Shown piece by piece: positions 15,806 through 64,000 of a stretch of 64,000 nucleotides of DNA (position 1 is the stretch's first letter; every line of letters starts with the position of its first letter). Origin of the DNA: Schizochytrium sp. TIO01 (lineage: Eukaryota > Protista > Bigyra: Labyrinthulomycetes); the NCBI GenBank assembly GCA_004764695.1, contig SMSO01000033.1, forward strand, positions 1,798,001 through 1,862,000. The letters are read 5' to 3'. The translations under genes and the position numbers were made by a program. The notes beneath the pieces were generated by a model, which worked only from the letters and a program-made list of their open reading frames with translations, searched no databases and was not told the origin of the DNA.

Positions 15806-18800
15806 TTAGGAGGATTCTGAGCAACCAAGGTCGTTGTAGTTGAAGGATACGCTGATGTTGTAACCAAAGTTGGCCATGCAGGAAGCCTCAACGTTCTCAG
15901 AGGCAAGGCAGCCATCCTCTGAGTTATCAAGGTCGCATTGCTCAAAACGAACAGGGTAGAGGAAGAGTGGCGCATACTTGCTTTCATAAGCAGGGATGAC
16001 AAGCTGGTTGTTACAGGGGAGCAACGTCGAGGGAATAAAGAAAACTTCCGTCCAGCCGTCGCTACCTTCATACTGAACAGATACACCCATGGTGCAGGCA
16101 TCGTAGTCGTCACGAGTGGAGTACTCGTCAACAGAGCTGGCACAGTAGCTGCTGACCTTGTCGCGCTCACCAGCAGAACCATAGTTGAGGACAATAGCAT
16201 AGTATCCCTCGGTGTCGGCGAGATCTTCGCACTCAAGCAGAAAGTCATCATCTGAATCAGTAGACGGCTTGAGTGGCAGGAGGGCGGTACATACAGCCTT
16301 GGTCCATGCAGCTGCGGTCTTAGCCGAGGAGGACTTGGAGATGCTGCTTACACAGTCATCGACAGAGTCAGGCTGGTTGGCAGTAGAGCACCACTTGGAA
16401 ATACCAATGTCAACCTGCTCAGAAGTACAAGATCCAGTCCAGAAGGCCTTGCAAGCCCTCACCTCTGCGGTAAGGTCCTCAACCTCGCACTCAATAGCGT
16501 TGGAGCTGTTGGTGTAGCTACCGGCGTACTTGTACAGGTCACCGGTCTCACAGTAGCCACCAGCAGTAGTGCGGTTGATGTTTGTGTCGATCATGTGCTC
16601 TACGTTGAAGCGGTATCCACCGACGTAGTCCGAAGTAATAGCCTCCGTTGCAATACAGGTCACACGGAAGAAGATGCCCATCCATGGCTCAAGTACTGAC
16701 CAAACAGCCTCCAAGTCACCATAGCCATCCTCACCAGGGGCCGTGTAGGTGAGCTGAAGAGCATCCTCTGCATCTACACCAGAGACAGTAGTCCACCCAT
16801 CCGCAGGGTTATCTGAGAAGCAGGTCTTCGGCTCAAGAGTGTAGGTTCCGTTCGGGGTAGTAAGAAGAAGCTTGGTGAGAACGGAGCGTTCACCAGTATA
16901 GAAGCTGAGCTGGAAGGTCGGCTCCTCGACGGAGTAGAGAATGACTTCATCTTCTCCAGAGTTTTCCCAATCTGGCAAACAAGGAGATCCATAAGCTCCG
17001 ATGTTTCCGCGGTGAGAGCCAATTTCGTTGGCGACAGTCTCATTCCAAATGCAAGGGTTTCCTGCGTGGTCAACAAGGCTAGAGCAAATATCTTCCTGCA
17101 TCCAGCAAGAGTCATCACGAGCATCACAAATGATGAACTTCTCGCGAGTACCATCGAAAGACTGACCAAAAGGATCACCCCAAAGGGCACACGAGTTGCA
17201 GCAGTCAGAATCAAAGCCGGTGGAAGGAGGAGTAAAGCTGACAGTCATGGTGGTGTTGTAGGACTCCTTCTGGATGTTCTTGCAATACTGAGTGTTCTGG
17301 CTCTCGGTTTGCTCACAGAAGGCGTTAAGCGTCTCAACATAACGGCAGGTAGCGTTTTCCTGGCCATTCACGTAGTTGTTGGTCTCACAGCACTGTTCGC
17401 AGGTTCCGACGTAAAACTCATCAGTGGAACCACATACAGTAGGAGAGGCGAGCAAGTTTTGTGTACAAATGGAGCAGTTAGCAGAAGATCCAGTGGTACC
17501 AACATCATTACCAGTGCTGCTGCATGACTCGCCAGCGAAGATAAGGTCGGCAGTGATTTGCATAATAGGCTTGCACTCTGTACCCTCTTCAGCAACAAGG
17601 CAAGATGCTTCGAGGCCACACTGACGCAAGCGAATCTGGTACTTGAAGAGTTCCGGGTAATCCTCGCCGGTCGCCACGAGGGAGGAGCCATCACAGGGGG
17701 GAGACTCGGGAGGGAAATAAAACACGGGGACCCATTCTTCATCTTGGTAGGTCTCGACCATAAGACCAGAAAGGCAGGTCTCGTTTTCCGGAATGTCAGT
17801 AAAGGCACTGAGGTCAGTTACGCAGGTCTCTGATACAGTCCACTGGTGCGGGATAATACCAACATAGGTTTGACGCCAGTCCCACCATCCAAACTCCTCA
17901 AGCTTGTTCATGCACTCATCAACGTAAGAATCTTGGCTCGAAGATCCGTATTCCTCTTGAGAGTTCATCTGACAAGCATACTTAATCCAAGTCTGAGACT
18001 GCTCTTCAGAAGTGCCCTCACGAATGTCTGAGAGACAGGTTGACACCATTTCCTCGTAAGAGCTAGACCCAGATGAGGCCTGAGTGTTGGAGAGCTCAGC
18101 GGTCTCACACCAGTACTGCTGCCAGCCATCGATAACACGGTCATAGCAAGAGTCATCAGCAAGAGCTTTGCAAGTGTTGGCAAGGTCGGTGAGTTGAATA
18201 CCAAGGCAGTTGACATGGAGCTCAGGATTATCCACGTTTGTTCCACTTTGGTCGCCACGGTCAATCACACCACTGAAGCAAAAGCCTTCACCATCGGTGC
18301 GGTTCTGTGTGTCGGTGACGTTTTCAATATCAAGGCGAGTGCGAACAGCATCAACGGCCTTGGTACAAATGATCTCAGCGTAAAGGCCGAGAGACTTGTT
18401 GCCAACATGCCAGCGAATTTCGACATCATTCGGGGTGCTCACATACCATTCAGATGGGATGGCAGATGAAGTTGACGGAAGCTGCCAGGCCTCAGCAGCA
18501 CCATCAGTGCCAACATCACGAGGATCGTAGTTGAAGCAGTCATCGGAGTTTAGCGTGTAAGGTTCGTCGTCACCAGGAAGGGTAATAATGAAGTCCATGA
18601 TCACACCACGTTCGCCAATACGTGTGTTCATCACAAGGTCATCGACATCAACCATGGGAATGTTCATGTATCCGCTGACGTTGTAGTCGGCCTGGCAAGG
18701 AGAACCACTGACGAGGTTGCTGACCCAGTCGTAGTGAGCATTGCCCTTGAGCCACTTGCAGCGGTTTCCAGCATGATCATACTGTTTCCGGCAGATGCTT

Positions 18801-19252
18801 TGCTTCATTTTGCATGTGGAGTTGTCACGAGCGTCACATTCGATAAACTGGTCGCGGGTGCCATCGAACGCCTCGCAGAGAGGATCTCCGTAGCACTTGC
18901 ACTTTTGACAGCAAGTTTCTGACGCGTTTGGGTATGTGACATTGATGTCGAAGGTGATGGTATCGTTGACATCGGGTTCGAAGTTAGCGCATGATGCGCT
19001 GATGACCTGGCTCTCACAGTAAGCGCTCTCGACAGTGAAAGTGCGGCATGTCTCGTTGTCGGAGCTGGTGAGAAGGTTGCCACAGCATCCAGGCATATTC
19101 AAGCTCAGGGTACCACAGCCAGCAAAGTCGCTGTCAATCCAGTCCAAGACCTCCTGCGAGGCGGAGCACTGGCTTGTCATTTGAGCTTGAGCGGATGTCA
19201 AACTCAACACGAGCCCGAGCGCCGCGAGAGATCGCGACATCTTAGGCTGCAT
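15806..19252 (-). CDS. Secreted Cys-rich tandem VWD-like glycoprotein, paralog 1 (1148 aa)
   Basis: Single uninterrupted ORF. Hydrophobic signal peptide (LAALGLVLSLTSAQA). Two homologous halves with CKCYGDPLCEAFDG and CALWGDPFGQSFDG, resembling the VWD start C-x3-GDPH-x2-TFDG, plus downstream GFC/GYC (cf. GLCG). Many Cys, N-x-S/T sequons, acidic. Alternative ATG at 19240. Confidence 0.93.
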   Translation of the reverse strand: MQPKMSRSLAALGLVLSLTSAQAQMTSQCSASQEVLDWIDSDFAGCGTLSLNMPGCCGNLLTSSDNETCRTFTVESAYCESQVISASCANFEPDVNDTITFDINVTYPNASETCCQKCKCYGDPLCEAFDGTRDQFIECDARDNSTCKMKQSICRKQYDHAGNRCKWLKGNAHYDWVSNLVSGSPCQADYNVSGYMNIPMVDVDDLVMNTRIGERGVIMDFIITLPGDDEPYTLNSDDCFNYDPRDVGTDGAAEAWQLPSTSSAIPSEWYVSTPNDVEIRWHVGNKSLGLYAEIICTKAVDAVRTRLDIENVTDTQNRTDGEGFCFSGVIDRGDQSGTNVDNPELHVNCLGIQLTDLANTCKALADDSCYDRVIDGWQQYWCETAELSNTQASSGSSSYEEMVSTCLSDIREGTSEEQSQTWIKYACQMNSQEEYGSSSQDSYVDECMNKLEEFGWWDWRQTYVGIIPHQWTVSETCVTDLSAFTDIPENETCLSGLMVETYQDEEWVPVFYFPPESPPCDGSSLVATGEDYPELFKYQIRLRQCGLEASCLVAEEGTECKPIMQITADLIFAGESCSSTGNDVGTTGSSANCSICTQNLLASPTVCGSTDEFYVGTCEQCCETNNYVNGQENATCRYVETLNAFCEQTESQNTQYCKNIQKESYNTTMTVSFTPPSTGFDSDCCNSCALWGDPFGQSFDGTREKFIICDARDDSCWMQEDICSSLVDHAGNPCIWNETVANEIGSHRGNIGAYGSPCLPDWENSGEDEVILYSVEEPTFQLSFYTGERSVLTKLLLTTPNGTYTLEPKTCFSDNPADGWTTVSGVDAEDALQLTYTAPGEDGYGDLEAVWSVLEPWMGIFFRVTCIATEAITSDYVGGYRFNVEHMIDTNINRTTAGGYCETGDLYKYAGSYTNSSNAIECEVEDLTAEVRACKAFWTGSCTSEQVDIGISKWCSTANQPDSVDDCVSSISKSSSAKTAAAWTKAVCTALLPLKPSTDSDDDFLLECEDLADTEGYYAIVLNYGSAGERDKVSSYCASSVDEYSTRDDYDACTMGVSVQYEGSDGWTEVFFIPSTLLPCNNQLVIPAYESKYAPLFLYPVRFEQCDLDNSEDGCLASENVEASCMANFGYNISVSFNYNDLGCSESS

Positions 19253-19305
19253 TATGTATTTTATGTGATACTCCTATCTCACGATTTATGTGACAGAAGT
19301 ACAGA

Positions 19306-19500
19306 GCACGTGCAGCACGTGCGCTCCCACTTCGTCTGCAAGAAGCGCAGAGAAGCGCGTTTGCGAGTGGGTTCTGGTTTTGCTTGCTGTTTGCAAGACA
19401 AGGCTTTCTTTCAAGTATTCCTAATGCGATTAAGTGATGTTTTTTGTTGGCAGTAGTTCATCGCAGTTACCATCGGAAGCAGATTGGATGTAGCACGTGC
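19306..19500. promoter_or_regulatory. Three GCACGTGC (G-box/E-box) palindromes upstream of paralog 1
   Basis: At 19306-19313, 19315-19322 and 19493-19500, all within 250 bp of the ATG. Confidence 0.4.
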
Positions 19501-21726: not shown

Positions 21727-21758
21727 GCAAAGCAAAGCAAAGCAAAGCAAAGCAAAGC
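21727..21758. repeat. (GCAAA)n microsatellite
   Basis: Direct reading. Confidence 0.9.
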
Positions 21759-22349
21759 GAAGCGATGCGAGAGCAAAGCGAGAGCACTCATATAGTGCAA
21801 CGACGCAAAGGAAGTGGGCAGTCTGAGGTTCTTAAACTCCAGGTTTCTTTGAAGAAAACCCAAAATGAGATGCTTTCTCTTCTTTGAAAATTCCTCAGCG
21901 CAAAACTAGTGAGTAGGCTTGGAATAAGGCCAAGGTTTGCTGCAGCAGGGTTTCAAGAAGCCACGATAGCTGGTTTTATAGAATGTACTTGGATTTACAG
22001 ATACACGGCTCGCCTCGCATCGAGACGGTCTGTTGAGACTTGAAGAAGAAGCAGGCAGGTGTTTTGCTCGATCATGTCAGCCCGGAGCCTCAGGGCAGCC
22101 ATGATAGCGGACCGCACCTTCTGCTGCCGCGGTACGAGAACCCAGCTCTTGCCCAGGAAGCACTAGTTAGGTTATCTGTGCCAAACAAAGCCCACAATAT
22201 CCCTGTTCTGCTTCAAGCGAAACAAACAAACAAATAAATAAGTAAATAAATAAATAAATAAATAAAAGAGCGAAAGCATCCCACCGCTTCAAGTTGCATG
22301 ACGAGTGGTTTTCAGTCGGTTTCTTTGTTTCTTTCATTGTTTCTTTCAT

Positions 22350-22350
<1 letters not shown>

Positions 22351-22386
<36 letters not shown>
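22351..22386. repeat. (GATT)n microsatellite
   Basis: Direct reading, about 9 units. Confidence 0.9.
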
Positions 22387-22882: not shown

Positions 22883-22934
22883 TGAATGAATGAATGAATG
22901 AATGAATAAATGAATGAATGAATGAATGAATGAA
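22883..22934. repeat. (TGAA)n microsatellite
   Basis: Direct reading, one variant unit. Confidence 0.9.
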
Positions 22935-28976: not shown

Positions 28977-29060
28977 AATGAATGAATGAAGGAATGAAGG
29001 AATGAATGAATGAATGAATGAATGAATGAATGAAGGAATGAAGGAATGAAGGAATGAATG
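28977..29060. repeat. Compound (GAAT)/(GAAG) microsatellite
   Basis: Direct reading. Confidence 0.9.
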
Positions 29061-33950: not shown

Positions 33951-34780
33951 GGAATTGCAAAACTAATAGTCAGCACCTCTCTCGACCGCATCGCCTAATA
34001 CAATATAGATTGTCAAACAGAAGAAAAATCTATTATTTATTATTTCTCATTTTCAGTTTTACTTTTTAAGGCCCAGATCACCATCATAATTATGACTGTA
34101 AAGGGCCTTTCGTAGTCTTCAGTTTCTTCATACCATTAAATGCTCAATACAGTGTAGGAAAGGAAGCCTGAGAGTAATATTTTCAAAGAATGATCTATTT
34201 GGCTTCACATTGAATCGAGTTGATCTTATAATAAAAGGCAAATTGATTCCATGCATCATTTTCCCCCCAAAGCTAGCAGCAGAGTATTTATTAACCATCA
34301 ATTCACAAGTCATGAGTTTTATTTTTCTGCATTAATAGAAAGGACCAAAACCTTGTATTCTTGGATGCGAATAAATTTATTGCACTTGGGTTTACTTTTG
34401 TGATAAAATTTGCACGGTGGAATCATTGAAGCTGTGTCTTGAAATTTTTACAAAGAAATCAAGAAGAGGCTGTAAAATAATATACAATTTCAATCGTGAA
34501 ACTTACTTCGTGCGGTTCTGTCCCTAAGTTATTGAAGTGCATGGCTTGTTAAAACTTTAAACATTCTTTATTTTGAAGAAAAAAATCCCTACACGAGTTA
34601 AATTTTGGTACCGGGCGAGCATGCAGAGTAGGCATATGATAAGTAATAGTACGAGGTTGCCAACTGCGCATCACCTTTGAAGGATGAGACTTGGACAATT
34701 GAAAACTGTCAAGTCTGTCATTATGATTTCGGGAGAAAGAATCTCCTCAAAAAGGAGCAATGACGCGAAAAAAGCCCCCT

Positions 34781-37700
34781 TTACTCCTGGTTCGGGCAAG
34801 AGAGAGAGTTCTCGTACGAGAACTGGTAGCTGATGGAGTAACCAAAACTAGCCATACAGGTAGCCTTTACATTAGCGCTTGCCGGGCATCCATCTTCGGT
34901 GTTGAGTACGTCACACTGCTCGAAACGGATCGGATAAACGAAGAGCGGGTAATACTTGCTATCCGTAGCGAAGAGCTGCAAAGAGTCATTGCATGGCATA
35001 AGGTTCTCGGGCATGAAAAACACCTCAACCCAAGCTGTTCCATTGTAGTATTGCACAGAAATACCTTGCACACAAGGGTCCACCTCATCACGTGTAGTAT
35101 ATTCGCTGACAGAGCTCGCGCAGTAACTCGAGTCATCAGAGCGCAAACCAGCAGATCCATACTTTTCAACAATGAGGTAGGGCTCGCTAGTAGACTCACC
35201 AAGATCCTCACAAGCACTAATGAACTCATCATCAGTCTCTGTAGAGTTCTTTTGGGGCAAAAGTGCAGTGCAGACTGCCGTAATCCAAGCTTGGCCAGTG
35301 GCCTTTTCAGAAGTCTTCAAAATGTTGCTTGAGCATGTCTCTACGCTATTCCGGCTGGTTTGCGATCTCACACCAGCGCTCAATACCGCGTTCTAACTGC
35401 TCGGGGGTACATGCACCAGACCAAAAGGCCTTACAAGCCAAGTGTGCCAATGTCAACGAAGTCTCCTCACACTCCTCGGCATAAGTGTTGTTGGTGTACT
35501 CGCCACCATACTGGTACATATCAGCATTCACTGCATAGCCGCCAATATCATCACGATCCATAGTGGCATCGACAAGGTGTTCAATATTGAGACGATAGCC
35601 ACCAATATAATCGGTTGTGAGCGACTCTGAGTATACACATGTAACACGGAAGAAAATGCCAGATACCGGGTCATAGACAGCCCAGACGCGCTCGTTGTCT
35701 CCATAGCCATCCTCTCCACCATCGGTAAAGGTCAAGTTGAGTGCCTCAGAAATGTCTTTGCCTGACACTGTAGTCCAGCCGGCATACTCTGAGCCGTCAT
35801 AGCAAGCCTCAGGGTCCAAAGTGTAGTGACCAAGTGAAGTATTCAGGAGAAGTTTGTCAAGAATGGAGCGCTCGCCAGTGTAAAAGCTCAAACGATAGAG
35901 TGGATCTTCTACGGTATAGAGAACAATTTCATCCTCACCAGACTTTTCCCAATCAGGCAAGCATGGTGATCCGTAAGCACCGATGTTGCCCCGGCTATTG
36001 CCCATGAGGTCACGAACGGTTTGGTTCCAAATACACGGGTTACCGGCGTGGTCAACAAGCGAGTCGCAAATTGATTCGTAAGGCCAACAGTCCTGATCAC
36101 GGGCGTCACAGACGATGAGCTTCTCGCGAGATCCATCAAAGGCTTGGCCAATCGGATCACCCCAAAGAGCAGCTTCGTTACAACATGAGCTAGATACAGT
36201 GTCGCTAGAGAAGTTGGTGACAACTGTGAGTGTCATTGTAGCGTTTGTTGAGTCCTGTTTAAGTTCTTCGCATACAGCGCTGATGGAACTGTTCGTGATG
36301 TCGCAGTATGGAGTCGTTACCATGAGTTCACGGCAACTCTGGTCTTCCTCACCTACTAAGTAGTTGCAGGTTTCGCAACACGTTTCACAGTAACCCATAG
36401 AATACTCATCATTGAAAGACGAGGTACAGACTTCAGGAGGTGAGTCAGTGTTCTCTGAGCAAGTCGAACATGTGGAATCAGAGCTTGTCGTAACATCCTC
36501 GGCACAAACACCATTGTATAAGGTCAAAGATCCAGTTACGTCGCTTGTGGGCTTGCAGCCAGTTCCGGGAACCTTGACGAGGCACTCTGCAGAAAGGCCA
36601 CACTGGCGGAAACGCACATATTGAGTGAACAGCTCGGGGAAACGATCGCCCGTGGCTTCTAGGACAGTTGTAGAGCAAGGAGGCGTCTCGGGAGGGATGT
36701 ACAAGAGAGTCACCCAGGTACCATTGCTCAGTTCTGCTTCAACAGCAACACCATTGGCACACGTAAGATCGTCAGGAATGGTGGTGTAGTTGTCAATGGA
36801 GGTACCGCATGTAACATCAGAGGTAGTCCACTGGTGCTCAATGATACCGGAGTATGTTTGAGACCAAGAGTAAGCCCCGAATTCTTCCATGTTGGACATA
36901 CATTCGGTGATGTAGGAGTTCTGAGCAGTACTGCCGTAAGTCTCTTCTGAGTTCATTTGGCACGCATACTCAAGCCAGGTGTATGCTTGCTCCTCATCAG
37001 TACCATTAGTGATTTCTTGCAGACAAACATCCACCATTTCACTGTAGGTACTAGCCGAGACGGAAGCCTGGGTGTTGGACAACTCGGCGTTTTCGCACCA
37101 GTATTGTTGCCAGCCTTCCACGGTACGGTTGTAACACGTGTTCTCAGTAAGAGCCTTGCAAGTGTTAACAAGGTCAGGGAGAGAGCGTTCAAGACATTGC
37201 ATATGAAGTGCAGCAGAATCCAAAACATTTGAACCATGCTGATCCTCGTTATCAATGACACCCGTGAAACAGAAACCATCACCTGCGGTGGTGTTCTGAG
37301 TTGTCACAATGCTGTCAATATCAAGACGCGTGCGAGTTGCTCCAACAGCCTTGGTACAAATGACAGTGACAAAAATACCGAGTTCGGAATCACCTACTTT
37401 CCAGTGAACCTCCACATCGATCGGAGAGGTGACAGACCAACTCGAAGGCAATGAGGATTCCGAAGATGGCAATGTCCAAGCTTTTGCGGCATTAGAAACG
37501 TTTACATCGCGAGGGTCGTATTCGAAGCAAGCGTCCGAGTTCAATTGATAAGGCTCACTATCTCCAGGCAGCTGCAGGAGAAAATCAGTTTGAACACCTC
37601 GCTCACCAATGAGGGTAGAGATCTTCAGGTCGTCATCGGTGTCGACCAAGACAAGCTCCATTTGCCCACTAACGTTATAGTCAGCTTGGCATGGAGAGCC

Positions 37701-38267
37701 ATCTTCAAGGTTGCTAGTCCACCAGGAGTAGTGGCTGTTACCCTTAAGCCATTTGCAACGATTGCCAGCGTGGTCGTATTGCTGACGGCAGATGCTCTGC
37801 TCCATCTCACATGTGGTAAAGTTACGAGCATCGCACTCAATCATTAGATCAAATGTTCCATTGAAGGACTCACACAATGGATCGCCATAGCACTTGCAGG
37901 AACGGCAACATGTATCCTCCTCATCCGGGTACACAAACTCGAGCTCCAAGGTGATAGAGTCATTGGAGGCAGGGGTGTAACCAGAGCAGCCTCCAATATT
38001 GATGTTATCACAGTAACGTTCAGAAAGGAGCTGTGTACGGCAAACAGCTTCGTCGGCCTCGTCAATAGAAGCAGCAAGTACATTGCCACAACACGAGCTA
38101 AACCCAAAGCTTGCAGAGCTGCATGAAGAATCCGAACTTGAGGAGTCGCTGACTGAAATGGTGCCTTCAGTGACACTACAAGTGTCTAGTGTCTGTGCTT
38201 CGACATTCTGAGATGCGCATAAAACTGAAAACACGGCACAGGTCAGAAGAACTGCTGATGCCTTCAT
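34781..38267 (-). CDS. Secreted tandem VWD-like glycoprotein, paralog 2, with a +1 frameshift at ~35349-35352 (recent pseudogene or sequence error)
   Basis: The 973-aa ORF ends at ANQPE*. The homologous C-terminus (NSVETC...LSCPNQE) continues in another frame. The coding strand reads CAG CCG G AAT AGC versus ANQP(D/N)(S/T)V in the paralogs. Removing one base gives ~1161 aa. Confidence 0.88.
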
Positions 38268-42935: not shown

Positions 42936-45900
42936 TTAGGATGATGTTGGGCATCCCAGATCATCACTATAGGTAAAAGCGTACTCGATACTGAAGCCAA
43001 AGTTTGACATGCATGTAGCTTCAATGTTGGACTCAGCAGGGCAGCCACTCTCCGAGTTGTCCAAATCACATTGCAGAAAGCGAATCGGGTTAACGAAAAG
43101 AGGGTGATACTTTTCCATGTTAGCAGGAACCTCAAGCGTACCATTGCATGGCATAAACGTGGAAGGGATGAAGAAAAGTTCAGTCCAACCATCAGTACTA
43201 TCTTCATATTGCACAGAGATACCGTTGGTACAAGGGTCGGTATCTTCGCGCATAGAATAATCATCTACAGAACTAGAACAGAAACTTCTTCCGCTGCCAA
43301 AGTCACCAACTGAGTTGAACTTCTCAACAATAGAGTAAGGGTCTCCTTCTGAATCATCAACAAGAGCGATGCAATCATCGATGAAATCATCCTTGGTCTC
43401 ATCACCTTTCATGGGCAAAAGAGCAGTGCAGACAGCCTCGATCCAAGCTTCGCCCGTCTTCTTTTCAGTTTTCTTTGTAATCTGGTTGATACACGCTTGT
43501 ACAGTGTTGGGTTGGTTCGCAGTCTTGCACCAATTTTCAATACCTAAAGGAATCTGCTCAGTGGTACAAGCACCAGACCAGAAGGCCTTGCAAGCAAGGT
43601 GGGCCAAAGACAAACTATTTACTTCGCACTCTTCAGCCATAGAGTTTTCCGTGTACTCGCCACCGTAGGAGAGCAGGTCTCCAGATACACAGTAGCCACT
43701 GACAACATCATCACCACGCTCAGTGTTGACATCGACGAGGTACTCGACATTGAGGCGATACCCACCAACGTACTCAGCATCATCGTTCGAAACAGAGTTC
43801 ACACAGGTAAGGCGGATGAGAATGCCAGTGGTTGGGTCACGTACGGCATAGGCACGCTCGTCAGATCCGTAGCCCTCGTCACCATCGATAAATGTTACAT
43901 CAAAGGCATCTGCAAAATCGATACCATTAATGGTGTGCCAGCCAGGGTAGTCTGTAGTGTCCTCAAAACAAGCCACAGGGTCCAATGTATAGTTTCCGCT
44001 CTGAGTTTCGAGGTACATCATATCGAGAATGGAACGCTCACCGGTGGCGAAACTGATGTTATAGAAGGCGGTATTAGAGTTGACAGAGTAGAGTACGATG
44101 ATGGCTTCACCAGATTCGGACCAATTTGGTAAACATGGAGAACCATATGCACCGATGCTAGCACGATTCTTACCAATGAGATCTTGCACAGTCTGATTCC
44201 AGATGCAGTCATTGCCAGCAAAGTCCTTGAGCCCGGTACATATTTTTTCAGTAGGCCAGCAGTTACTGTCGCGAGCATCGCATACAATGAGCTTATCACG
44301 GGAGCCATCAAAGCCCTGACCGAACGGGTCGCCCCAAAGCATGCACGTTTCACAGCAGCTTGTCGTATTGGTACTCTCCTCGCTAAACCTCAAGGTAAGA
44401 CTAGCATTACTAGTGGTACTTATGAGGTTCCCACAGACAGTGCTCAACTCAGAATCCGAAGCATTACAGTACGGAGCTGTAATCGTCAAATTGCGGCAAG
44501 TTTGGCCTTCTTCACCAACCGCGAAGTTGTTCGTGGAGCAGCAGCTATCACAAGATCCCAAAGTAAAGTTCTCCATCTCGTTTGAAGTACAGATAGAAGG
44601 GAAGTTAATGGATGTATCATCGTATGAGCATACGTTGCATGTAATGTTTCCTTGCGGGCAAACGTTGCCTCCAAAATTAATATTACCACTTACAGTGGAT
44701 AATGGTTTACAATTTGAGCCATCATCAGCAACAAGACACTCTGCGCCTAATCCACACTGACGAAAGCGAACCCGGTACTGGAACAGAATCGGGAAGTCCT
44801 CCCCTGTGATGATCGTGCTAACGTCACTGCAAAGAGGCTTATCAGGTGGGATGTAGAATACAGGGGTCCAGTCACCATCTACATCAGCTTCCACAATTAC
44901 TCCAGTTGCACAAGTCAAGTCATCTGGAATATTAGTAGCGTAGTCGTCCCAAGAGGTAGCACAAGGGACATCCGCAATATCCCACTGGTGAAAAATGATG
45001 CTCTCATATGCTTCCTCCCAAACAGACCAGCCGTTTTCTTCAAGAATGTTTACACACTCAGCGACGTATGAGTTCTGGGAGCTGCTGCCATAAGAAAGAC
45101 CAGAGTTCATTTGGCAGGCATATTCAATCCACGTCATAGATTGCTCCGACGCTTTGCCATTGCGAAGGTCTGTAAGACAAGTGGCAACAACTTCAGCGTA
45201 GGTCACATCAGCACTGTAGGCCTGTGTGTTCACAAGCTCAGCAGACTCACACCAGTACTGCTGCCAGTCCAGTACGGTACGTTCATAGCAGCTAAAATCG
45301 CTGAGGGCTTTGCAAGTATAGGTGAGGTCCGAAAGAGAAGCAGACAGACACTTTTTGTGAAGCGATACAGTATCGGCAACATTCGTACCACTCAAGTCTC
45401 CTGAGGGAATAATGTTGGTGAAGCAGTAGCCATCGCCAACACTGTCTGCGGTGATGCGAGTATCAGTGATGTTCTCGATATCAAGGCGAGTGCGAGTAGC
45501 ACCAACAGCCTTGTTACAGATGACATCGGCGTAGATACCAATGCTCGCATCTCCAATGTGCCAGCGAATCTCCACATCGTTAGGGGTGCTTACACTCCAT
45601 GTAGATGGAAGAGATGACACAGATGACGGAAATGACCATGCGGCAGCGGCGTCAGAATTGCCAACATCGCGAGGGTCATAGTTGAAACAATCATCAGAGT
45701 TTATTGTGTACGGCTCGGAATCATCAGAAAGCTGAATGCTAAAGTCTGTTTGGACACCACGCTCACCAATAAGAGTGGACATGACGAGGCCACTAGTATT
45801 GATAAGCAATAGCTCGAGCTGACCGCTTACGCTGTAGTCAGCCTGACACGGAGAGCCATCTTCAAGGTTGTTTCTCCACCAAGGGTAGTTGAGGTTTCCT

Positions 45901-46403
45901 TTGAGCCACTTGCAGCGGTTGCCAGCATGGTCGTACTGTTGACGACAAATGCTTTGCTCCATTCTACAGGTAGTAGAGTTACGGGCATCACATTCAATGA
46001 GCTGGTTAGTTGAACCGTTAAAGGCTTGGCAGAGAGGATCACCGTAGCATTTGCACTTGCGGCAGCATGTGTCATTGACGTCAGGGTAAGTGAAGGCGAT
46101 CTCCATTTCGAGGGTATGCGAGCTGTTAGGGGTAAAGTCTGTGCAGCCATCATCCTGATTTGCACAGTATGCTGACTGCATAATAGCTGTGCTGCAGATC
46201 GGGTCTGTGCTGTCGGCAGTGTAGGTATAGTTGAGCGAGTTACCGCAGCATCCACCAAATTCGAATTTCTGAGTAGTACAATTATTTCCCAAAGGCGTGG
46301 TCAAATCTAACTGCGTTGCTTCACAAGAGCCTTGCGCCGTGCTGGACTTCACAAAGCTCAGGAGCATTGCAGTGATAATTGCTGCATAACTGCGTACCTG
46401 CAT
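42936..46403 (-). CDS. Secreted tandem VWD-like glycoprotein, paralog 3 (1155 aa)
   Basis: Intact ORF with signal peptide. CKCYGDPLCQAFNG and CMLWGDPFGQGFDG motifs. Colinear Cys pattern with the other paralogs. Confidence 0.93.
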   Translation of the reverse strand: MQVRSYAAIITAMLLSFVKSSTAQGSCEATQLDLTTPLGNNCTTQKFEFGGCCGNSLNYTYTADSTDPICSTAIMQSAYCANQDDGCTDFTPNSSHTLEMEIAFTYPDVNDTCCRKCKCYGDPLCQAFNGSTNQLIECDARNSTTCRMEQSICRQQYDHAGNRCKWLKGNLNYPWWRNNLEDGSPCQADYSVSGQLELLLINTSGLVMSTLIGERGVQTDFSIQLSDDSEPYTINSDDCFNYDPRDVGNSDAAAAWSFPSSVSSLPSTWSVSTPNDVEIRWHIGDASIGIYADVICNKAVGATRTRLDIENITDTRITADSVGDGYCFTNIIPSGDLSGTNVADTVSLHKKCLSASLSDLTYTCKALSDFSCYERTVLDWQQYWCESAELVNTQAYSADVTYAEVVATCLTDLRNGKASEQSMTWIEYACQMNSGLSYGSSSQNSYVAECVNILEENGWSVWEEAYESIIFHQWDIADVPCATSWDDYATNIPDDLTCATGVIVEADVDGDWTPVFYIPPDKPLCSDVSTIITGEDFPILFQYRVRFRQCGLGAECLVADDGSNCKPLSTVSGNINFGGNVCPQGNITCNVCSYDDTSINFPSICTSNEMENFTLGSCDSCCSTNNFAVGEEGQTCRNLTITAPYCNASDSELSTVCGNLISTTSNASLTLRFSEESTNTTSCCETCMLWGDPFGQGFDGSRDKLIVCDARDSNCWPTEKICTGLKDFAGNDCIWNQTVQDLIGKNRASIGAYGSPCLPNWSESGEAIIVLYSVNSNTAFYNISFATGERSILDMMYLETQSGNYTLDPVACFEDTTDYPGWHTINGIDFADAFDVTFIDGDEGYGSDERAYAVRDPTTGILIRLTCVNSVSNDDAEYVGGYRLNVEYLVDVNTERGDDVVSGYCVSGDLLSYGGEYTENSMAEECEVNSLSLAHLACKAFWSGACTTEQIPLGIENWCKTANQPNTVQACINQITKKTEKKTGEAWIEAVCTALLPMKGDETKDDFIDDCIALVDDSEGDPYSIVEKFNSVGDFGSGRSFCSSSVDDYSMREDTDPCTNGISVQYEDSTDGWTELFFIPSTFMPCNGTLEVPANMEKYHPLFVNPIRFLQCDLDNSESGCPAESNIEATCMSNFGFSIEYAFTYSDDLGCPTSS

Positions 46404-49275: not shown

Positions 49276-52200
49276 TTAAGCAGAGCTTGGGCATCCCAAA
49301 TCACCCGAGTAGCTGAAAGCGTACTCAATGCTGAAACCAAAGTTAGACATGCATGTAGCCTCAACGTTAGACTCAGCAGGGCAGCCACTCTCAGAGTTGT
49401 CCAAGTCACATTGCACAAAACGAATCGGGTTCACAAACAGAGGGTAGTACTTGCTCTTGTAAGCAGGAATCTCCAGAACACCATCACACGGCATGAGCGT
49501 AGAAGGAATGAAGAATACTTCAGTCCAGCCATCAGTGCTATCTTCGTACTGAACAGAGATACCATTGATGCAAGGGTCAGTGTCGTCACGTGTGGAGTAC
49601 TTGGTCACAGACTTAGCACAGTAACTGCTGACTGAACCAAAGTCACCAGCAGAGCCATATCTCTCCACAATAGAGTAAGGGTCGCCTGACTCATCCGCAA
49701 CAGCAATACATTCATTAATGAATTTCTTGTCGCTGCCAGACTCTTTCAGAGGCAAGAGAGCCTTACATACAGCCTTGATCCAAGCCTTGCCGGTCTTCTT
49801 CTCAGTACCCTTAGTAATCTGGCTGACACACTTCTTCACAGTGTTAGCTTGGTTGGCAGTCTTACACCAGTTCTCGATACCGAGAGAAATCTGCTCAGTG
49901 GTACAAGCACCAGACCAGAAGGCCTTGCAAGCAAGGTGAGCCAAAGACAGATCATTCACTTCGCACTCCTCGGCGTAAGAGTTGTCCGTGTAGTCCCCAC
50001 CGTAGGAGAGCAAATCTCCAGATACACAGTAGCCACTGACAACATTATCACCACGCTCAGTGTTGACATCGACGAGGTCCTCAACATTGAGGCGATACCC
50101 ACCAACGTATTCAGCATCATCGTTCGAAACAGAGTTCACACAGGTAAGGCGAATGAAAATACCAGTGGTTGGATCACGTACAGCATAAGCACGCTCGTCA
50201 GATCCGTAGCCCTCGTCACCATCGATGAAGGTCACATTAAAGGCATCTGCAAAATCAGTACCAGAAACGGTGGTCCAGCCAGGGTAGTCTATAGTGTCCT
50301 CAAAACAAGCCACAGGGTCCAAGGTGTAGGATCCGCTCGAAGTCTCAAGGTACATCATATCGAGAATGGAGCGCTCGCCTGTGGCAAAGCTGATGTTGTA
50401 GAAAGCAGCGCTGGAGTTGACAGTGTAAAGCACGATGATGTCTTCACCAGACACGGACCAATTCGGCAAACAGGGAGAACCGTACGCTCCGATACTGGCA
50501 CGGTTATTACCGATAAGCTCGCGCACGCTCTCATTCCAAACACAAGCGTTACCAGCATGGTCCTTAAGTTCAGTACAGATGTCTTCGGTAGGCCAGCAAT
50601 CAGAGTCGCGAGCGTCACAAACAATGAGCTTCTCGCGAGAACCATCAAAGGCCTGACCAAACGGATCACCCCAGAGCATGCAAGTCTCACAGCAGTCTGT
50701 CGAGTTTCCGCTGTCCTCGCTAAAGGTCAAAGTAAGAGTACCCTTGCGGGCCTTCTTCTCGAGGTTAGCACAAACCGTACTCATTTCAGAGTCAGAAGCA
50801 TCACAGTAGGGAGTGGTAATGGTAATGTTACGACAGGTCTGGTCTTCCTCGTCAACAGCGAAGTTGTTTGAGATACAGCAGTTCTGGCACGTTCCCAAGG
50901 TGTACTCATCCTGTTCGTTTGTAGAACAGACAGAGGGAAAGTCAACAGTCTCATCGTCGTAAACGCAAACATTGCAGGTAAGATCTCCTAGCTGGCAGAC
51001 ATCGCCTCCAAAGGTCACTGTAGCATTCACGGTGGCCAAGGGCTTGCAGTCTGAGCCATCATCAGCAACAAGACACTCTGCACCCTGACCGCACTGACGG
51101 AAGCGAATACGGTACTCGAACAAAGCCGGGAAGTCAGCACCTGTGACAGACATATCAGCGTCGCTGCAAGGAGGATACTCAGGAGGGATGTAAAACACAG
51201 GGGTCCAGTCACCATCCACATCAGCTTCAACAATTACACCAGTTGCACAAGTAAGATCGTCCGGAATGTCAGTGTACTCACTCAAAGAAGCGGCACAAGA
51301 AACATCCGAGGAGGTCCACTGGTGGGCAATGATACTTGAGTACACCTTCTCCCATGCAGGCCACCCGTTTTCTTCAAGAATGTTGACACATTCAGTGACG
51401 TATGAGTTCTGGGAGCTGCTGCCATAAGAAAGACCAGAGTTCATCTGACAAGCGTATTCAATCCAAGTCGTGGACTGCTCCGTTGAGTTGCCATTGCGAA
51501 GGTTTGTAAGACAAGTGGCAACAACCTCAGCGTACGTCACATCAGCACTGTATGCCTGAGTGTAAGCAAGCTCAGCAGTCTCACACCAGTACTGCTGCCA
51601 GTCCGGCACGGTACGCTCGTAGCAAGTATCATCAGCAAGGGCCTTACAGGTGTTGGCAAGGTCCGGCAGTGATGCAGAGAGACACTTGTAGTGAAGAGCG
51701 ACAGTATCGGCAACGTTAGTGCCACTCAAGTCGCCCGAAGGAATTACGTTGGTGAAGCAGTAGCCATCGCCAACACTGTCTGCGGTGATGCGAGTATCAG
51801 TGATGTTCTCGATATCAAGGCGAGTGCGGTTAGCACCAACAGCCTTGTTACAGATGACATCGGCGTAGATACCAATGCTCGCATCTCCAATGTGCCAGCG
51901 AATCTCCACATCGTTAGGGGTGCTTACACTCCATGTAGATGGAAGAGATGACACAGATGACGGAAGTGACCATGCGGCAGCAGCGCCAGAATTGCCAACA
52001 TCGCGAGGGTCATAGTTGAAACAATCCTCAGAGTTGATTGTGTACGGCTCGGAATCATCAGAAAGCTGAATGCTGAAGTCTGTTTGGAACACCACGCTCA
52101 CCAATAAGAGTGGACATGACGAGGCCATCAGTACTGAGAAGCACAAGTTCGAGCTGGCCACTTACGTTGTAGTCAGCTTGGCATGGGGAACCATCCTCGA

Positions 52201-52735
52201 GGTTGCTTGTCCACCAAGGATAGTTGAGGTTACCCTTGAGCCACTTGCAGCGGTTGCCAGCATGGTCGTACTGTTGACGACAGATGCTTTGCTCCATTTC
52301 ACAGGTAGTAGAGTTACGGGCATCGCATTCAATGAGCTGGTTAGTTGAACCGTCAAAGGCTTCGCAGAGGGGGTCACCGTAGCATTTGCACTTGCGGCAG
52401 CATGTATCATTGACGTCAGGGTAGGTGAAGGCGATCTCCAGTTCGAGGGTGTGTGAGCTGTTAGCCGTAAAGCCTGTACAGCCTCCGTCCTGGTTTTCAC
52501 AGTATGCAGACTCCATAATAGCTGTGCTGCAGATCGGGTCTGTGCTGTCGTCAGTGTAGGTATAGTTGAGCGAGTTACCGCAGCATGCACCAAAGTCGAA
52601 TTCCTGAGAACCACAGCCATTTGAAGCCCAGTTCATGGTTGAAAGCGTAGCGTCACAAGAATCCTGACCTGCGCTGGTCTGTGCAGAGGCCAAAACCACC
52701 ACAGCGGCAATCGCCGCAGATGTAAAGGCCTGCAT
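49276..52735 (-). CDS. Secreted tandem VWD-like glycoprotein, paralog 4, with a +1 frameshift at 52088-52089
   Basis: True ATG is at 52735 (MQAFTSAAIAAVVVLASA; the ORF-track start at 52750 is TTG). The coding strand reads GGT GTT CCA AAC versus GGT GTC CAA ACA in paralog 3, i.e. one extra T. The downstream frame stays open for >900 codons. Corrected length is ~1152 aa. Confidence 0.88.
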
Positions 52736-57167: not shown

Positions 57168-60100
57168 CTAAGAAGATCCTGAGGTACAGCCTACACTGCC
57201 AGAATAACTATAAGCATAGCTGACACTCAATGGTAGCATGGGCATGCAGCTAGCTTCAATGTTAGACTGTGCTGGACAACCATCTTCAGAGTTGTCGAGG
57301 TCACACTGCACAAACTGAATTGGGTAGATGAAAAGAGGCCAGTACTTAGACTTGTACGCCGGAATCGTAAGTTCGCCATTGCAAGGCATTAAATTTGCTG
57401 GAATGAAGAAGAGTTCAGTCCACTCAGAACCAGGGTTGTATTGCACGGAGATTCCACCCACGCACGGATCAATTTTGTCACGAGTTGTGTATTTTGCAAC
57501 AGAGCTTGCGCAGTAACTGCTTACAGATGTGCGATCACCAGCGGAACCATACTCTTCAACGATTGAATATGGGTCACCAGACGACGAAGCCAGCGCTTGG
57601 CAAGCTTTTATGAACTCCTTGTTTGTCTGAGAAGAATCCTTTTCGGGCAAAAGGGCTTGGCATACAGCATTAATCCAATTGTTTCCAATTTTATTACTTT
57701 TCTTTGTGATTTTTTGCACGCACTGACTCACTGTATTCGGCTGGTTCGCTATTTTACACCAGCTCTCAACGCCAAGTTCAATCTCGTCAGGGGTACAGGA
57801 ACCAACCCAGAATGCCTTGCAGGCGCGTAAAGCCAGAGAGAGATCCTCTTCCTCGCAGTCTTCTGCGATGGTACTGTTTGTGTAATCTCCACCATAAACG
57901 CGTAGGTTGGCCGTTTCACAGTACCCACTTGCGTCACTGCGAGACACAACGTCAATCAACTTTTCGACGTTCAGACGGTAGCCTCCAATGTACGACGTTG
58001 TAACCGCTGGAGTGCGAACACATGTAACACGAAAGAAGATGCCTGAGTTTGGTTCGTAAACAGCCCAGACACGTTCATCAGTTCCATAACCTCCTTCTCC
58101 ACCATTAGTAAATGTAAGCTCAAGAGCAGAATCATAGCTATCCCCAGAGACAGTAGTCCATCCAGGGTAGGTAGAGGTGTCGAAGCAAGTTGTAGGATCC
58201 AGCGTGTAGCTTCCGCTTGCGGTTTTCAGGTTCATCTGGCTCAAAATTGAACGTTCACCAGTGTAGAAAGTCAAGTTGAACTGAGATTCTTCCAGAGCGT
58301 AAAGAACTACCTCAGCTTCGCCGGAGAGGTCCCAGTCTGGCAAACAAGGCGACCCATAAGCACCAATATTTGCTCGGGAGCTTCCAATCAAGTCTTGGAC
58401 AGTTTGATTCCAAACGCAAGCATTACCAGCATGGTCCAACGTGCTGTTGCAAATAGCCTCGTCTGTGACGCAGTCATCTCCACGAGCATCGCAAATGATA
58501 AGCTTCTCTCGGGACCCATCGAATGCTTGACCGAATGGATCACCCCAGAGGCCACATGACTGACAGCAGCTCGCGGTATCGACATTATCGTAACCTTCGA
58601 AAGTAAGAGTTAGCTGTCCCTTTCTATTCTTCTTTTTCAGCTTATTGCAGACACCGCTCATTGATGAATCGCTAGCATCACAAAATGGAGTTGTCACAGT
58701 AAGGTTGCGGCACGTTTGATCTTCCTGACCTGGTAAGAAGTTGTTACTTTCACAACAGCTACCGCAAGTTCCGATGGTGAATGTATCAGACTGACTTGCT
58801 TCACAGATTGCAGGTGCATCCTCAGTTGACGAAGTCAATTGGCAGTTGCAAAGGTTTGCAGAGCATTGTCGGGTTGGGAAATCAATGCTTCCAGAGACAG
58901 TGCTCAATGGCTTGCAATCTGAGCCTTTAGGGGCAACAAGGCATTCAGCCCCCAAACCACACTGGCGAAAGCGGATCCTATAAAGAAAGAGATCAGGGTA
59001 CTTGTCACCAGTTGTACTCAGATCAGCATCACTGCAGGGTGGGCTTTCAGGTGGGAAGTAGAAAATAGGCGTCCATTCGCCACTTTTATTGACTTCCAGA
59101 ACCAGACCCGTCGCGCATGTAAGATCATCTGGAATTGAAGTGAAGTCATCAAGTGAGGAAGCACAGGTTACTTCATCGGATGTCCATTGATGAGGAATTA
59201 CGCCATTGTATTCTTGGGCCCAAGAATACCAGCCGTTCTCTTCGATCGCGTTTACGCACTCGGTCACATACGAGTTTTGTGCAGACGAGTTGTATGAAAG
59301 GAGCGAGTTCATTTGGCACGCGTAATTAATCCAAGTCTTAGATTGCTCTTCAGAAGTTCCATCACGAATTTCTGTTAAGCAGGTCGCGACCATATCTGCA
59401 TATGAGCTTGCACTCACTGACGCTTGCGTGTTTTCTAGTTCTGCAGTCTCGCACCAGTATTGCTGCCATCCAGGAATTGTACGCAAATAGCATGTATCAT
59501 CAGCGAGAGCTTTGCACGTGTTTGCGAGATCAGGAAGTTGTGCAGATAAGCACTTAAAGTGCAAAGCAACAGAATTATCGACATTTGTTCCACTCTGAAG
59601 ACCAGAGTCAATCACATTAGTGAAGCAGTATCCATCGCCTTCACTATCTTCCGTAGGTCGTGTATCCGTAATATTCTCGATATCCAATCGAGTACGGCTT
59701 GCGCCCACAGCCTTGTTACAAATCACATCGACATAAAAACCTACACTGGTATCACCAACATGCCAACGAATCTCAACATCGTTCGGTGTGCTCACTGACC
59801 AGGTTGAAGGAATTGAGCTTACGCCAGACGGTAGCTGCCATGCAGTTGCAGCATCATCATCGCCAACATCGCGAGGGTCATATTCGAAGCAATCATCGGA
59901 ATTGATTGTGTATGGCTCGGAATCGGAAGAAAGCTGAAATGAAAAATCTGTCTGCACACCACGCTCACCAATAAGCGATGACATTATGACACCACTAGAG
60001 TTGACCAGAACTAGCTCCATCTGACCACTCACGCTATAGTCGGCTTGGCAAGGGGAACCATCCTCGAGATTGCTGTTCCACCACGAATAATCAGGATTGT

Positions 60101-60614
60101 TCTTAAGCCACTTGCATTTATTACCAGCATGGTCAAATTGAAGTCCACAGATGTCTTCCTCCATTTTGCATGTGGTAAAGTTTCTTGCGTCGCATTCAAT
60201 CATTTGGTTCGTAGAGCCGTCAAATGCCTCACAAAGAGGATCTCCATAACATTTACATTTTCGACAGCAAGTATCATCAACATCTGGATATGTAAATGTA
60301 ATGTCAAGATTCACCTCATGGGTACTGTTTGGCGTGAAGGTATCGCAGCCTTCGGTTGCACAGAATTCGGATTCCGCAATCGCGACACTACAAATTGGCT
60401 CAGTTTCACCGTCACTTGTAAACGTATACTCGAGGGAATTACCGCAACATCCGCCAAATTCAAAGGATAGGATGCCGCAATCGTCCGTACTAGTACTCCA
60501 AGGTAATGCTAGAAGCGAGGCATCACAAGTAGATTGCCCATTGACGGACGTCATTGACGATAGGGCAAGAAATGCTATCACGAGCAAAGCCGTGCCGGCC
60601 TGCATCGTGGGCAT
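57168..60614 (-). CDS. Secreted tandem VWD-like glycoprotein, paralog 5 (1148 aa)
   Basis: Intact ORF with signal peptide (ALLVIAFLALSSMTSVNG). CKCYGDPLCEAFDG and CGLWGDPFGQAFDG motifs. Alternative ATG at 60605 (MQAG). Confidence 0.93.
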   Translation of the reverse strand: MPTMQAGTALLVIAFLALSSMTSVNGQSTCDASLLALPWSTSTDDCGILSFEFGGCCGNSLEYTFTSDGETEPICSVAIAESEFCATEGCDTFTPNSTHEVNLDITFTYPDVDDTCCRKCKCYGDPLCEAFDGSTNQMIECDARNFTTCKMEEDICGLQFDHAGNKCKWLKNNPDYSWWNSNLEDGSPCQADYSVSGQMELVLVNSSGVIMSSLIGERGVQTDFSFQLSSDSEPYTINSDDCFEYDPRDVGDDDAATAWQLPSGVSSIPSTWSVSTPNDVEIRWHVGDTSVGFYVDVICNKAVGASRTRLDIENITDTRPTEDSEGDGYCFTNVIDSGLQSGTNVDNSVALHFKCLSAQLPDLANTCKALADDTCYLRTIPGWQQYWCETAELENTQASVSASSYADMVATCLTEIRDGTSEEQSKTWINYACQMNSLLSYNSSAQNSYVTECVNAIEENGWYSWAQEYNGVIPHQWTSDEVTCASSLDDFTSIPDDLTCATGLVLEVNKSGEWTPIFYFPPESPPCSDADLSTTGDKYPDLFLYRIRFRQCGLGAECLVAPKGSDCKPLSTVSGSIDFPTRQCSANLCNCQLTSSTEDAPAICEASQSDTFTIGTCGSCCESNNFLPGQEDQTCRNLTVTTPFCDASDSSMSGVCNKLKKKNRKGQLTLTFEGYDNVDTASCCQSCGLWGDPFGQAFDGSREKLIICDARGDDCVTDEAICNSTLDHAGNACVWNQTVQDLIGSSRANIGAYGSPCLPDWDLSGEAEVVLYALEESQFNLTFYTGERSILSQMNLKTASGSYTLDPTTCFDTSTYPGWTTVSGDSYDSALELTFTNGGEGGYGTDERVWAVYEPNSGIFFRVTCVRTPAVTTSYIGGYRLNVEKLIDVVSRSDASGYCETANLRVYGGDYTNSTIAEDCEEEDLSLALRACKAFWVGSCTPDEIELGVESWCKIANQPNTVSQCVQKITKKSNKIGNNWINAVCQALLPEKDSSQTNKEFIKACQALASSSGDPYSIVEEYGSAGDRTSVSSYCASSVAKYTTRDKIDPCVGGISVQYNPGSEWTELFFIPANLMPCNGELTIPAYKSKYWPLFIYPIQFVQCDLDNSEDGCPAQSNIEASCMPMLPLSVSYAYSYSGSVGCTSGSS

Positions 60615-63644: not shown

Positions 63645-64000
63645 TTAACTTGAACCTCCAGCAGAGGAGCAGTCGAGATTGTCACTGTAGGAATAAGTGA
63701 GGCCAATCTGAAAGCCAAAGTTCGACATGCATGTGGCCTCAACATTCTGGCTAGCAGGGCAGCCATTCTCAGAGTTATCAACGTCGCACTGCTGAAAGCG
63801 AATCGGGTTTGTGAAAAGGGGAAGATACTTGCTGCTAGTCGCAGGTAGCTGCAAAATTCCATCGCAAGGTAAGTAATTAGAAGGCATGAAAAAGACTTCC
63901 ACCCAGTCGGAACCATCGTAATATTGAACAGAAACTCCGTTGATGCACGCATCAACATCATCACGCATTCCGTATTCAGATGGAGAGCTAGCGCAGTAGC
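63645..64000 (-). CDS. C-terminal part of paralog 6 (truncated by the window edge)
   Basis: Frame is open to the edge: YCASSPSEYGMRDDVDACINGVSVQYYDGSDWVEVFFMP...NPIRFQQCDVDNSENGCPASQNVEATCMSNFG...CSSAGGSS*. Clearly homologous to the other C-termini. Confidence 0.9.
   Translation of the reverse strand, partial: YCASSPSEYGMRDDVDACINGVSVQYYDGSDWVEVFFMPSNYLPCDGILQLPATSSKYLPLFTNPIRFQQCDVDNSENGCPASQNVEATCMSNFGFQIGLTYSYSDNLDCSSAGGSS

Follow-up and report, generated by a model that had tools for sequence, protein, structure and literature searches.

The 64,000-nucleotide stretch analysed here (the window, C32:1798001-1862000 in the 64-Mb, 37-contig genome assembly of Schizochytrium sp. TIO01) carries part of a tandem array of genes for cysteine-rich, putatively secreted proteins, each composed of two homologous units of about 560 aa. 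Structural modelling indicates that each half of these proteins holds a cryptic VWD-type β-sandwich that is missed by standard domain models, an assignment that we regard as solid on the strength of the predicted model.

A VWD-type sandwich in each unit

The units were analysed through two alignments, namely A2, an alignment and profile of 40 units, and A3, an alignment of distant relatives. The AlphaFold2 model of the N-terminal unit (N-unit), built from A2, reaches a mean predicted local distance difference test score (pLDDT) of 87.3 and a predicted template-modelling score (pTM) of 0.80. In a Foldseek search of this model against the PDB, all nine matches at E <= 0.001 are D assemblies of MUC2, MUC5AC, MUC5B, VWF and FCGBP, and these same assemblies occupy 34 of the first 35 ranks, with a best E value of 1e-4 and a probability of 1.0; the low global template-modelling scores of the matches are explained by a different arrangement of the domains. 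VIA-align places MUC5AC D2 first (Z 14.2, root-mean-square deviation (rmsd) 2.7 A over 152 aa), and its top 30 entries all bear VWD domains, the next class reaching Z 5.6. A Foldseek-independent scan of 48,161 PDB representatives likewise returns VWD-bearing structures in all of its top 19 positions (Z 9.2-13.8), followed by the next class at 7.2. The VWD-bearing matches extend beyond mucins and VWF to Cypridina luciferase (Z 13.3), vitellogenin (Z 11.1), the Tettigonia green pigment protein (Z 10.4) and RGMB (Z 10.3). The matched range spans unit residues of about 86-345, and the ESM Atlas provides weak leads to VWD clusters (score 0.80).

The start of the module is defined by the motif C-C-x-x-C-x-(C)-(W/Y)-G-D-P-x-x-x-x-F-D-G, in which G-D-P and the following Phe are invariant across all 40 units; in the C-terminal unit (C-unit) of paralog 1, the G-D-P lies at aa 692-694. 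Of the 63 distant relatives, 31 have the full GDPH motif, which in mucins, FCGBP and RGM is the canonical start of VWD and the site of autocleavage. In the window copies that were read, L or F takes the place of His after G-D-P, and E and R occur there elsewhere in the family. The conserved G-D-P...FDG start supports homology to VWD.

At the level of sequence profiles, no Pfam family is significant for the units in a set of 5 full proteins, 40 units and 63 distant relatives, and the profile check proposed with the initial annotation, using Pfam VWD, C8 and TIL, returned no match in this set, for VWD none even at E <= 1; the structural check proposed beside it, a comparison of AlphaFold models with vWF and MUC2 D assemblies, did recover a VWD sandwich in the unit. 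The A2 profile finds no match among PDB sequences at E <= 10, and single-sequence searches of Pfam and PDB likewise turned up nothing of relevance. A six-frame search of the genome with PF00094 was silent, and because its controls were silent likewise, it is uninformative.

Helical module and a tentative split CUB-like sandwich

Folded alone, the helical module (unit residues 296-468) adopts six helices with a pLDDT of 80.3. No Foldseek match to it has an E value below 2.5, its best VIA-align Z is 4.3, and no mucin or VWF chain occurs among the matches listed for it. Likeness of this module to C8 was considered and rejected on the low best Z together with the absence of a Pfam C8 match.

Below the VWD matches, the whole-unit scan contains at least 12 CUB entries, with Z values of 5.2-7.2 over about 103-110 residues, among them Kremen, neuropilin, C1s, MASP, TSG-6, PCPE and enteropeptidase; the split CUBs of C5 and TEP1 are also found among the structure matches. 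The CUB alignments are scattered over model positions of about 6-551, which suggests that the N-terminal (1-85) and C-terminal (470-557) segments of the unit come together as a single sandwich. From these structure matches the unit is read as a split CUB-like sandwich into which a VWD domain and a novel helical module are inserted. Pfam CUB has no match in the 40 units, and because the Z values fall within the 'common arrangement' range, the pairing of the two segments as one split CUB-like sandwich is a tentative, model-based assignment.

These results divide the proposal of the initial annotation that the proteins are divergent D assemblies. Its VWD component stands, with MUC5AC D2 as the closest structure, and its C8, TIL and E components do not: the VWD-C8-TIL-E layout is unsupported, the helical module being unlike C8 and the flanks resembling a split CUB rather than TIL or E. 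Pfam CTCK and VWC also have no match.

Protein properties and internal duplication

From end to end, the N half can be aligned with the C half at about 28-30% identity, the cysteines staying in register. A hydrophobic leader of about 20-25 aa, read as a signal peptide, opens every copy, and a leader equivalent to that of paralog 1 is present in all paralogs and orthologs. The remaining properties were determined for the three intact window proteins. Beyond the leader, no 19-aa window has a Kyte-Doolittle mean of 1.3 or more and the C-termini are hydrophilic, so that the proteins are taken to lack a transmembrane segment or a glycosylphosphatidylinositol (GPI) signal. Each contains 68 Cys (34 in each unit), a number that is even and equal between the halves and speaks neither for nor against disulfide polymerisation. 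The isoelectric point is about 4.05-4.13, there are 11-19 NxS/T N-glycosylation sequons, and S, T and P together make up 22-24% of the residues, with no repeats in the window proteins.

The maximum-likelihood tree, a quick reconstruction from 40 units, places all 18 C-units in one clade with support 96. The N-units all lie on the other side of the tree, and four single-unit proteins with PT repeats or PAN domains are nested among them. This separation indicates, as far as the sequences can tell, a single internal duplication that predates the radiation of the family; the resulting two-unit gene would then have been duplicated locally in tandem.

Tandem array and intergenic spacers

Six minus-strand paralogs are found in the window by the listing of open reading frames (ORFs) and by tblastn with the 1148-aa ORF at 15806-19252 as query. 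They share 50-60% protein identity with one another, and the start-to-start distances of the copies are 19.0, 8.2, 6.3 and 7.9 kb. The array extends beyond the window and comprises 9 genes over 97 kb (C32:1,793,492-1,890,873). The truncation of paralog 6 is due only to the window edge, since the genome contains this gene as an intact ORF of 1153 aa (C32:1861648-1865106). The Logan protein P0001 is 99.7% identical to paralog 1.

Much of the gene-level description in the initial annotation is borne out by these data: six same-strand, intronless paralogs of ~1150 aa agree with the tblastn and ORF results, the two homologous halves with the half-to-half alignment, and the signal peptides, the absence of a transmembrane or GPI tail and the lack of a proline/threonine/serine (PTS) region with the properties given above. 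One correction concerns the state of the copies: three window ORFs are intact, as is paralog 6 in the genome, and paralogs 2 and 4 carry insertions of one nucleotide in this assembly.

The annotation also stated that no other intact gene lies between the copies, and the spacer searches agree. No ORF longer than 200 aa occurs between the copies, Pfam has no match for any of 10 ORFs taken from the spacers and from the flank upstream, a six-frame hidden Markov model (HMM) search of the spacers finds no decayed family copy, and Rfam and tRNA searches of the spacers return no match. Two spacers of ~15-17 kb (window 1-15805 and 19253-34780) are ORF-free and unusually long for a gene-dense protist genome. 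The 15.4-kb spacer consists of unique DNA, and decayed copies or transposons as the content of the long spacers were rejected on this ground and on the absence of HMM, Pfam, Rfam and tRNA matches. The long spacer contains microsatellites of the types (TGAA)n, (GGAA)n and (AAAT)n at window 22219-22958, 28955-29086 and 31138-31225, and an 89-bp stretch (window 28976-29064) matches C13:3324559-3324647 at 92%.

Two further observations concern individual copies. At the stop of paralog 5 (window 57159-57170), the Logan protein P0007 reads through and gains 4 aa, a strain difference at that site. A 340-aa antisense ORF lies inside paralog 4 (window 49849-50871, plus strand); it most probably arises as a side effect of codon composition on the sense strand of this gene.

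Transcription, frameshifts and selection

Contigs from four public runs (X1, X4, X10 and X11) were compared with window 33600-39500. The X1 and X4 contigs cover only about 34549-38452 and are collinear with the genome, the DNA run X10 covers everything, and X11 provides one collinear contig across paralog 2 (34662-38520) with coverage reaching upstream to 39456. A poly-T loose end before 34549 represents the poly(A) tail of a minus-strand mRNA, and the remaining joints in the comparison are cross-matches to paralogs. The gene-limited collinear contigs and the poly(A) tail thus establish that paralog 2 is transcribed as an unspliced mRNA of about 3.9 kb. In addition, two other members of the family have complete counterparts among MMETSP transcripts, at 99.4-99.9% identity (P0010 to L009 and P0178 to L010).

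The frame of paralog 2 is changed by a single-base insertion, an extra A in CCGGAATAG, and that of paralog 4 by an extra C in GTTCCAAAC. The extra base of paralog 2, at 35349-35351, is absent from the contigs of X1, X10 (DNA) and X11, and the Logan protein P0006 is an intact 1161-aa version of this paralog with 99.5% identity; the extra base must accordingly stem from an error in the assembly or from a private mutation. For paralog 4, no intact counterpart was recovered when one was searched for. Synonymous sites are saturated between paralogs, and where the ratio of nonsynonymous to synonymous divergence (dN/dS, omega) is measurable it is 0.13-0.22, paralogs 3 and 4 giving a dS of 0.69 and an omega of 0.18. 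Judged by these ratios, the paralogs are under purifying selection.

Family size and taxonomic range

At least 29 family loci are present in the genome, arranged in tandem clusters. Beyond the array described above, C32 has two more clusters (2.24-2.26 Mb and 0.20-0.23 Mb), others are found on C36 (3.53-3.58 Mb and 4.48-4.49 Mb) and on C4, and singletons occur on C13, C31 and C35 and at C32:1.67 Mb. Among 1.84 billion representatives, the A2 profile matches only 158 proteins at E <= 0.001. All named members belong to the thraustochytrids Hondaea fermentalgiana or Thraustochytrium sp. LLF1b, and the other matches are unnamed marine metagenome, MMETSP or Logan proteins. Three cluster look-ups found no named taxon beyond thraustochytrids, their distant matches being mostly metagenome or Logan proteins, and a word-indexed profile search with A2 returned a single Hondaea fragment only. 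Several of the Hondaea members carry adjacent locus tags within a single contig of 93 kb. By its named members, the family is specific to thraustochytrids, in line with the thraustochytrid host that the initial annotation had considered.

Two matches of a different kind were encountered in these searches. A bacterial 3658-aa 'tandem-95 repeat protein' from Paraglaciecola sp. (P0113, WP_414701802.1) matches profile positions 196-249 in 29 stretches (E 8e-26), which could reflect compositional bias or a shared β-hairpin motif. In one distant relative in A3, an Ice_binding domain (PF11999, E 3.7e-47) is present as well, pointing to a protist of polar waters or sea ice as its source.

Architectures of other paralogs

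Outside the array, the unit occurs in combination with other modules (Table 1). The C32 genes L031, L032 and L033 are neighbours that encode proteins of 1500-2000 aa with PT(S/D/K/E) repeats. A gap of about 120 nt, reflecting an intron or else a frameshift, divides the VWA region of L038, which matches Pfam VWA positions 1-49 and 60-117. In L037, a weak transmembrane-like match near the C-terminus (aa 1796-1824) leaves room for this protein to be membrane-anchored, as it may be. The association of a VWD-type unit with PTS repeats, PAN/Apple or VWA is typical of extracellular adhesive and matrix proteins.

Table 1. Features of the window and of family members elsewhere in the genome. Plain coordinates are window positions; aa ranges of modules refer to paralog 1.
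Feature	Coordinates	Strand	Description and basis
Paralog 1	15806..19252	-	Intact, 1148 aa; ORF list and translation
Putative signal peptide, aa 1-24	19181..19252	-	Hydrophobic leader ending AQAQ
First part of split CUB-like sandwich, N-unit aa 25-109	18926..19180	-	Model strands at unit residues 8-82; tentative
VWD-like β-sandwich, N-unit aa 110-324	18281..18925	-	VIA-align Z 9.2-14.2 and motif
Invariant G-D-P, N-unit aa 122-124	18881-18889	-	Motif conservation
Helical cysteine-rich module, N-unit aa 325-492	17777..18280	-	AlphaFold2 pLDDT 80, six helices; no known fold match
Second part of split CUB-like sandwich, N-unit aa 493-581	17510..17776	-	Model and structure matches; tentative
C-unit, aa 587-1148	15809..17494	-	Four-module layout as in N-unit; half alignment, unit HMM domains, C-unit clade
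Paralog 2	34781..38267	-	Frame change, one extra base at 35349-35351; intact form elsewhere 1161 aa
Paralog 2 transcript	34549..38452	-	Unspliced; poly(A) tail after 34549
Paralog 3	42936..46403	-	Intact, 1155 aa; tblastn and ORF list
Paralog 4	49276..52735	-	Frame change near 52083, one extra C; otherwise conserved
Paralog 5	57168..60614	-	Intact, 1148 aa; Logan protein P0007 99.7% identical
Paralog 6, 3' end	63648..64000	-	Runs past window edge
L034, L035, L036 (C36)			Signal peptide, unit, (A/E)PT repeats of 125-214 aa, unit
L031, L032, L033 (C32)	L031:2447-8368, L032:2358-7364, L033:2307-6791 (C32:197-232 kb)		Unit, PAN/Apple, PT repeats over hundreds of residues; Pfam PT up to 1e-139, PAN_1/PAN_4
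L038 (C13)	L038:2690-6641, C13:4818689-4822640		Signal peptide, unit, about 400 aa of (APTD)n, VWA
L037 (C31)	L037:1129-6675		Extra Cys-rich head of about 150 aa; repeated Cys-rich tail modules
L040 (C32:1.67 Mb)	L040:1176-4481		Divergent member; extra Cys-rich N-terminal head of about 150 aa

Comparison with known systems

The closest likeness is to the D assemblies of mucins, VWF and FCGBP, with which the family shares the VWD sandwich (Z 11-14, rmsd 2.5-3.4 A over about 140-150 aa), an opening C-x-x-(W/Y)-G-D-P-(H)-x-x-x-F-D-G motif, and chains that are cysteine-rich, presumably secreted and composed of several units. Like mucins and vWF, thraustochytrid paralogs carry PT(S) repeats between or after their units, and one carries a VWA domain. 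Unlike D assemblies, the thraustochytrid family has no Pfam VWD, C8 or TIL match, its helical module of about 150 aa is not C8-like, and its VWD and helical modules appear to be inserted in a split CUB-like sandwich. It differs further from gel-forming mucins in having no CTCK or VWC match and no PTS in the window genes, and in being non-animal and lineage-restricted.

Ectocarpus is, like the thraustochytrids, a stramenopile. VWD has been reported in only a few protists, Naegleria and Ectocarpus, and never in combination with C8 or TIL (Lang et al. 2016, PMC4948705). Compared by domain content, these proteins resemble the thraustochytrid family in carrying VWD outside Metazoa without C8 or TIL; unlike that family, they are detected by Pfam VWD, and the thraustochytrid proteins are set apart by a four-module unit of their own, an internal duplication and a large expansion. 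RGM/hemojuvelin is comparable in fold (RGMB, Z 10.3) and in the placement of G-D-P at an equivalent position, with GDPH in half of the distant relatives, whereas the window paralogs have no His after G-D-P and RGM is a GPI-anchored receptor ligand of other architecture.

The genomic arrangement has a parallel in spiggin, the nest glue of sticklebacks, which PMC4989455 describes as a bulk adhesive encoded by a tandem array of MUC19-derived secreted VWD genes. Both are tandemly arrayed multigene families of secreted or putatively secreted VWD proteins; spiggin, however, is an animal protein with canonical D assemblies, and the parallel is one of analogy only. CUB domains (Kremen, neuropilin, C1s/MASP and TSG-6) align with the joined N- and C-terminal segments at Z 5.2-7.2, and the split CUB of C3, C5 and TEP offers a likeness in the form of a sandwich interrupted by a large insertion. 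In contrast to these CUB domains, the family has no Pfam CUB match, and the resemblance is topological only.

A literature search found no paper that links thraustochytrids with VWD or mucin-like proteins. Thraustochytrid vegetative cells bear a covering of extracellular matrices and of scales that derive from the Golgi (PMC12221091), and the settlement-induced candidates of the same study include a secreted apple-domain 'micronemal adhesin-like' protein (A0A6S8AHQ2), a lead to which the PAN-bearing paralogs L031-L033 may relate.

Function and alternative explanations

On balance, we favour the reading that these genes encode glycoproteins of a lineage-specific family with a structural or adhesive role outside the cell, a function assigned by inference. 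Each protein joins two tandem copies of a single ancient unit of about 560 aa, and in each copy a divergent VWD domain and a novel six-helix cysteine-rich module are predicted to be inserted into a split CUB-like sandwich. The chains are very acidic and N-glycosylatable, with up to 17 possible disulfides per unit; they would enter the endoplasmic reticulum and Golgi, become oxidised and glycosylated, and then be exported. Outside the cell, they may form a structural or adhesive part of the scale wall, of the extracellular polymer layer or of the attachment sites of the ectoplasmic net, where two VWD-containing units per chain could provide bivalent contacts with proteins or glycans and thereby build a network. 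The sister subfamilies with O-glycosylatable PT repeats, PAN/Apple and VWA would represent hydrated, mucin-like members.

Several points weigh against this reading. Secretion, localisation, oligomerisation and function are all inferred, the VWD assignment has no Pfam or PDB sequence match in its support, and the tentative CUB-like assignment depends on middling Z values of 5-7. The window proteins themselves contain no PTS, PAN or VWA domain, with an even Cys count no cysteine stands out as free for bonding between chains, and VWD is also found in the non-matrix proteins vitellogenin, Cypridina luciferase and RGM. Finally, the settlement proteome paper on A. limacinum (PMC12221091) makes no mention of such a family.

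Part of this evidence would be accommodated if the proteins were true homologues of VWD-C8-TIL-E assemblies that polymerise through intermolecular disulfides in the manner of vWF and gel-forming mucins. The VWD fold finds its best structural matches in the D assemblies of mucins and VWF, some alignments extend into the first helices after the VWD domain (model 90-345 against VWF 384-629), and the chains are cysteine-rich with two units, separated by PT repeats in certain paralogs. Such homology is nevertheless very unlikely in our judgement, given that Pfam C8 and TIL never matched, that the lone helical module, at a best Z of 4.3, has no D-assembly match, that the C-terminal module, rather than forming TIL or E, appears to complete a CUB-like sandwich together with the N-terminal module, that no CTCK or VWC was found, and that the Cys number is even. 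The near-equal Z values of Cypridina luciferase (13.3), vitellogenin (11.1) and the green pigment protein (10.4) to those of mucins point in another direction, namely a ligand-binding, carrier or enzyme-like role in which a VWD pocket binds lipids, pigments or small molecules, for example in nutrient capture from detritus by thraustochytrids, which are osmotrophic decomposers. This role is improbable: the proteins showed no catalytic motif, members of the family are joined to PT repeats, PAN and VWA in the manner typical of adhesive and matrix proteins, and the high tandem copy number suits bulk structural products.

The large, lineage-specific and tandemly duplicated character of the family, the presence of FCGBP and mucins among its structural matches, and the persistent viruses reported from thraustochytrids in the literature would also fit defensive, mucus-like surface proteins that trap or agglutinate bacteria or viruses and expand through biotic conflict. 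An omega of about 0.13-0.22 and the invariant cysteine and motif positions indicate that constraint dominates rather than an arms race, and we consider a defensive role unlikely. Frameshifts in 2 of the 6 assembled copies might, in turn, be taken as a sign of decaying pseudogenes or assembly artefacts devoid of function; this idea is effectively refuted by three intact full ORFs in the window, an intact paralog 6 in the genome, purifying selection and transcription, near-identical intact proteins in independent assemblies, and the absence of the 35349 frameshift from three other runs.

Implications for thraustochytrid biology

VWD domains form the polymerising core of animal mucus and haemostasis. 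What is new here is a cryptic VWD family with a unit architecture of its own and a lineage-specific expansion, whose sister genes parallel mucins and vWF in combining VWD with PTS and VWD with VWA; for researchers of mucin evolution and of labyrinthulomycetes, the VWD assignment is the surprising element. Extending the structural or adhesive reading, it is possible, though rather doubtful, that thraustochytrids independently built a mucin-like extracellular polymer system from an ancient, cryptic VWD domain, in which compact two-unit proteins, like those of the array, serve as cross-linkers or as building blocks of scales and matrix, and paralogs of the types unit-PTS-unit, unit-PTS-PAN and unit-PTS-VWA provide a hydrated gel or adhesive. 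If true, the family would account for a protein component, long sought, in the scale wall, in the extracellular polymer layer or in the adhesive of the ectoplasmic net, and it would constitute a non-animal counterpart of gel-forming mucins and vWF. The genes are candidates for the uncharacterised protein matrix of the walls, extracellular polymer and attachment structures of thraustochytrids, organisms of ecological and industrial importance, and the family offers an outgroup for studying the evolution of VWD-based extracellular polymers.

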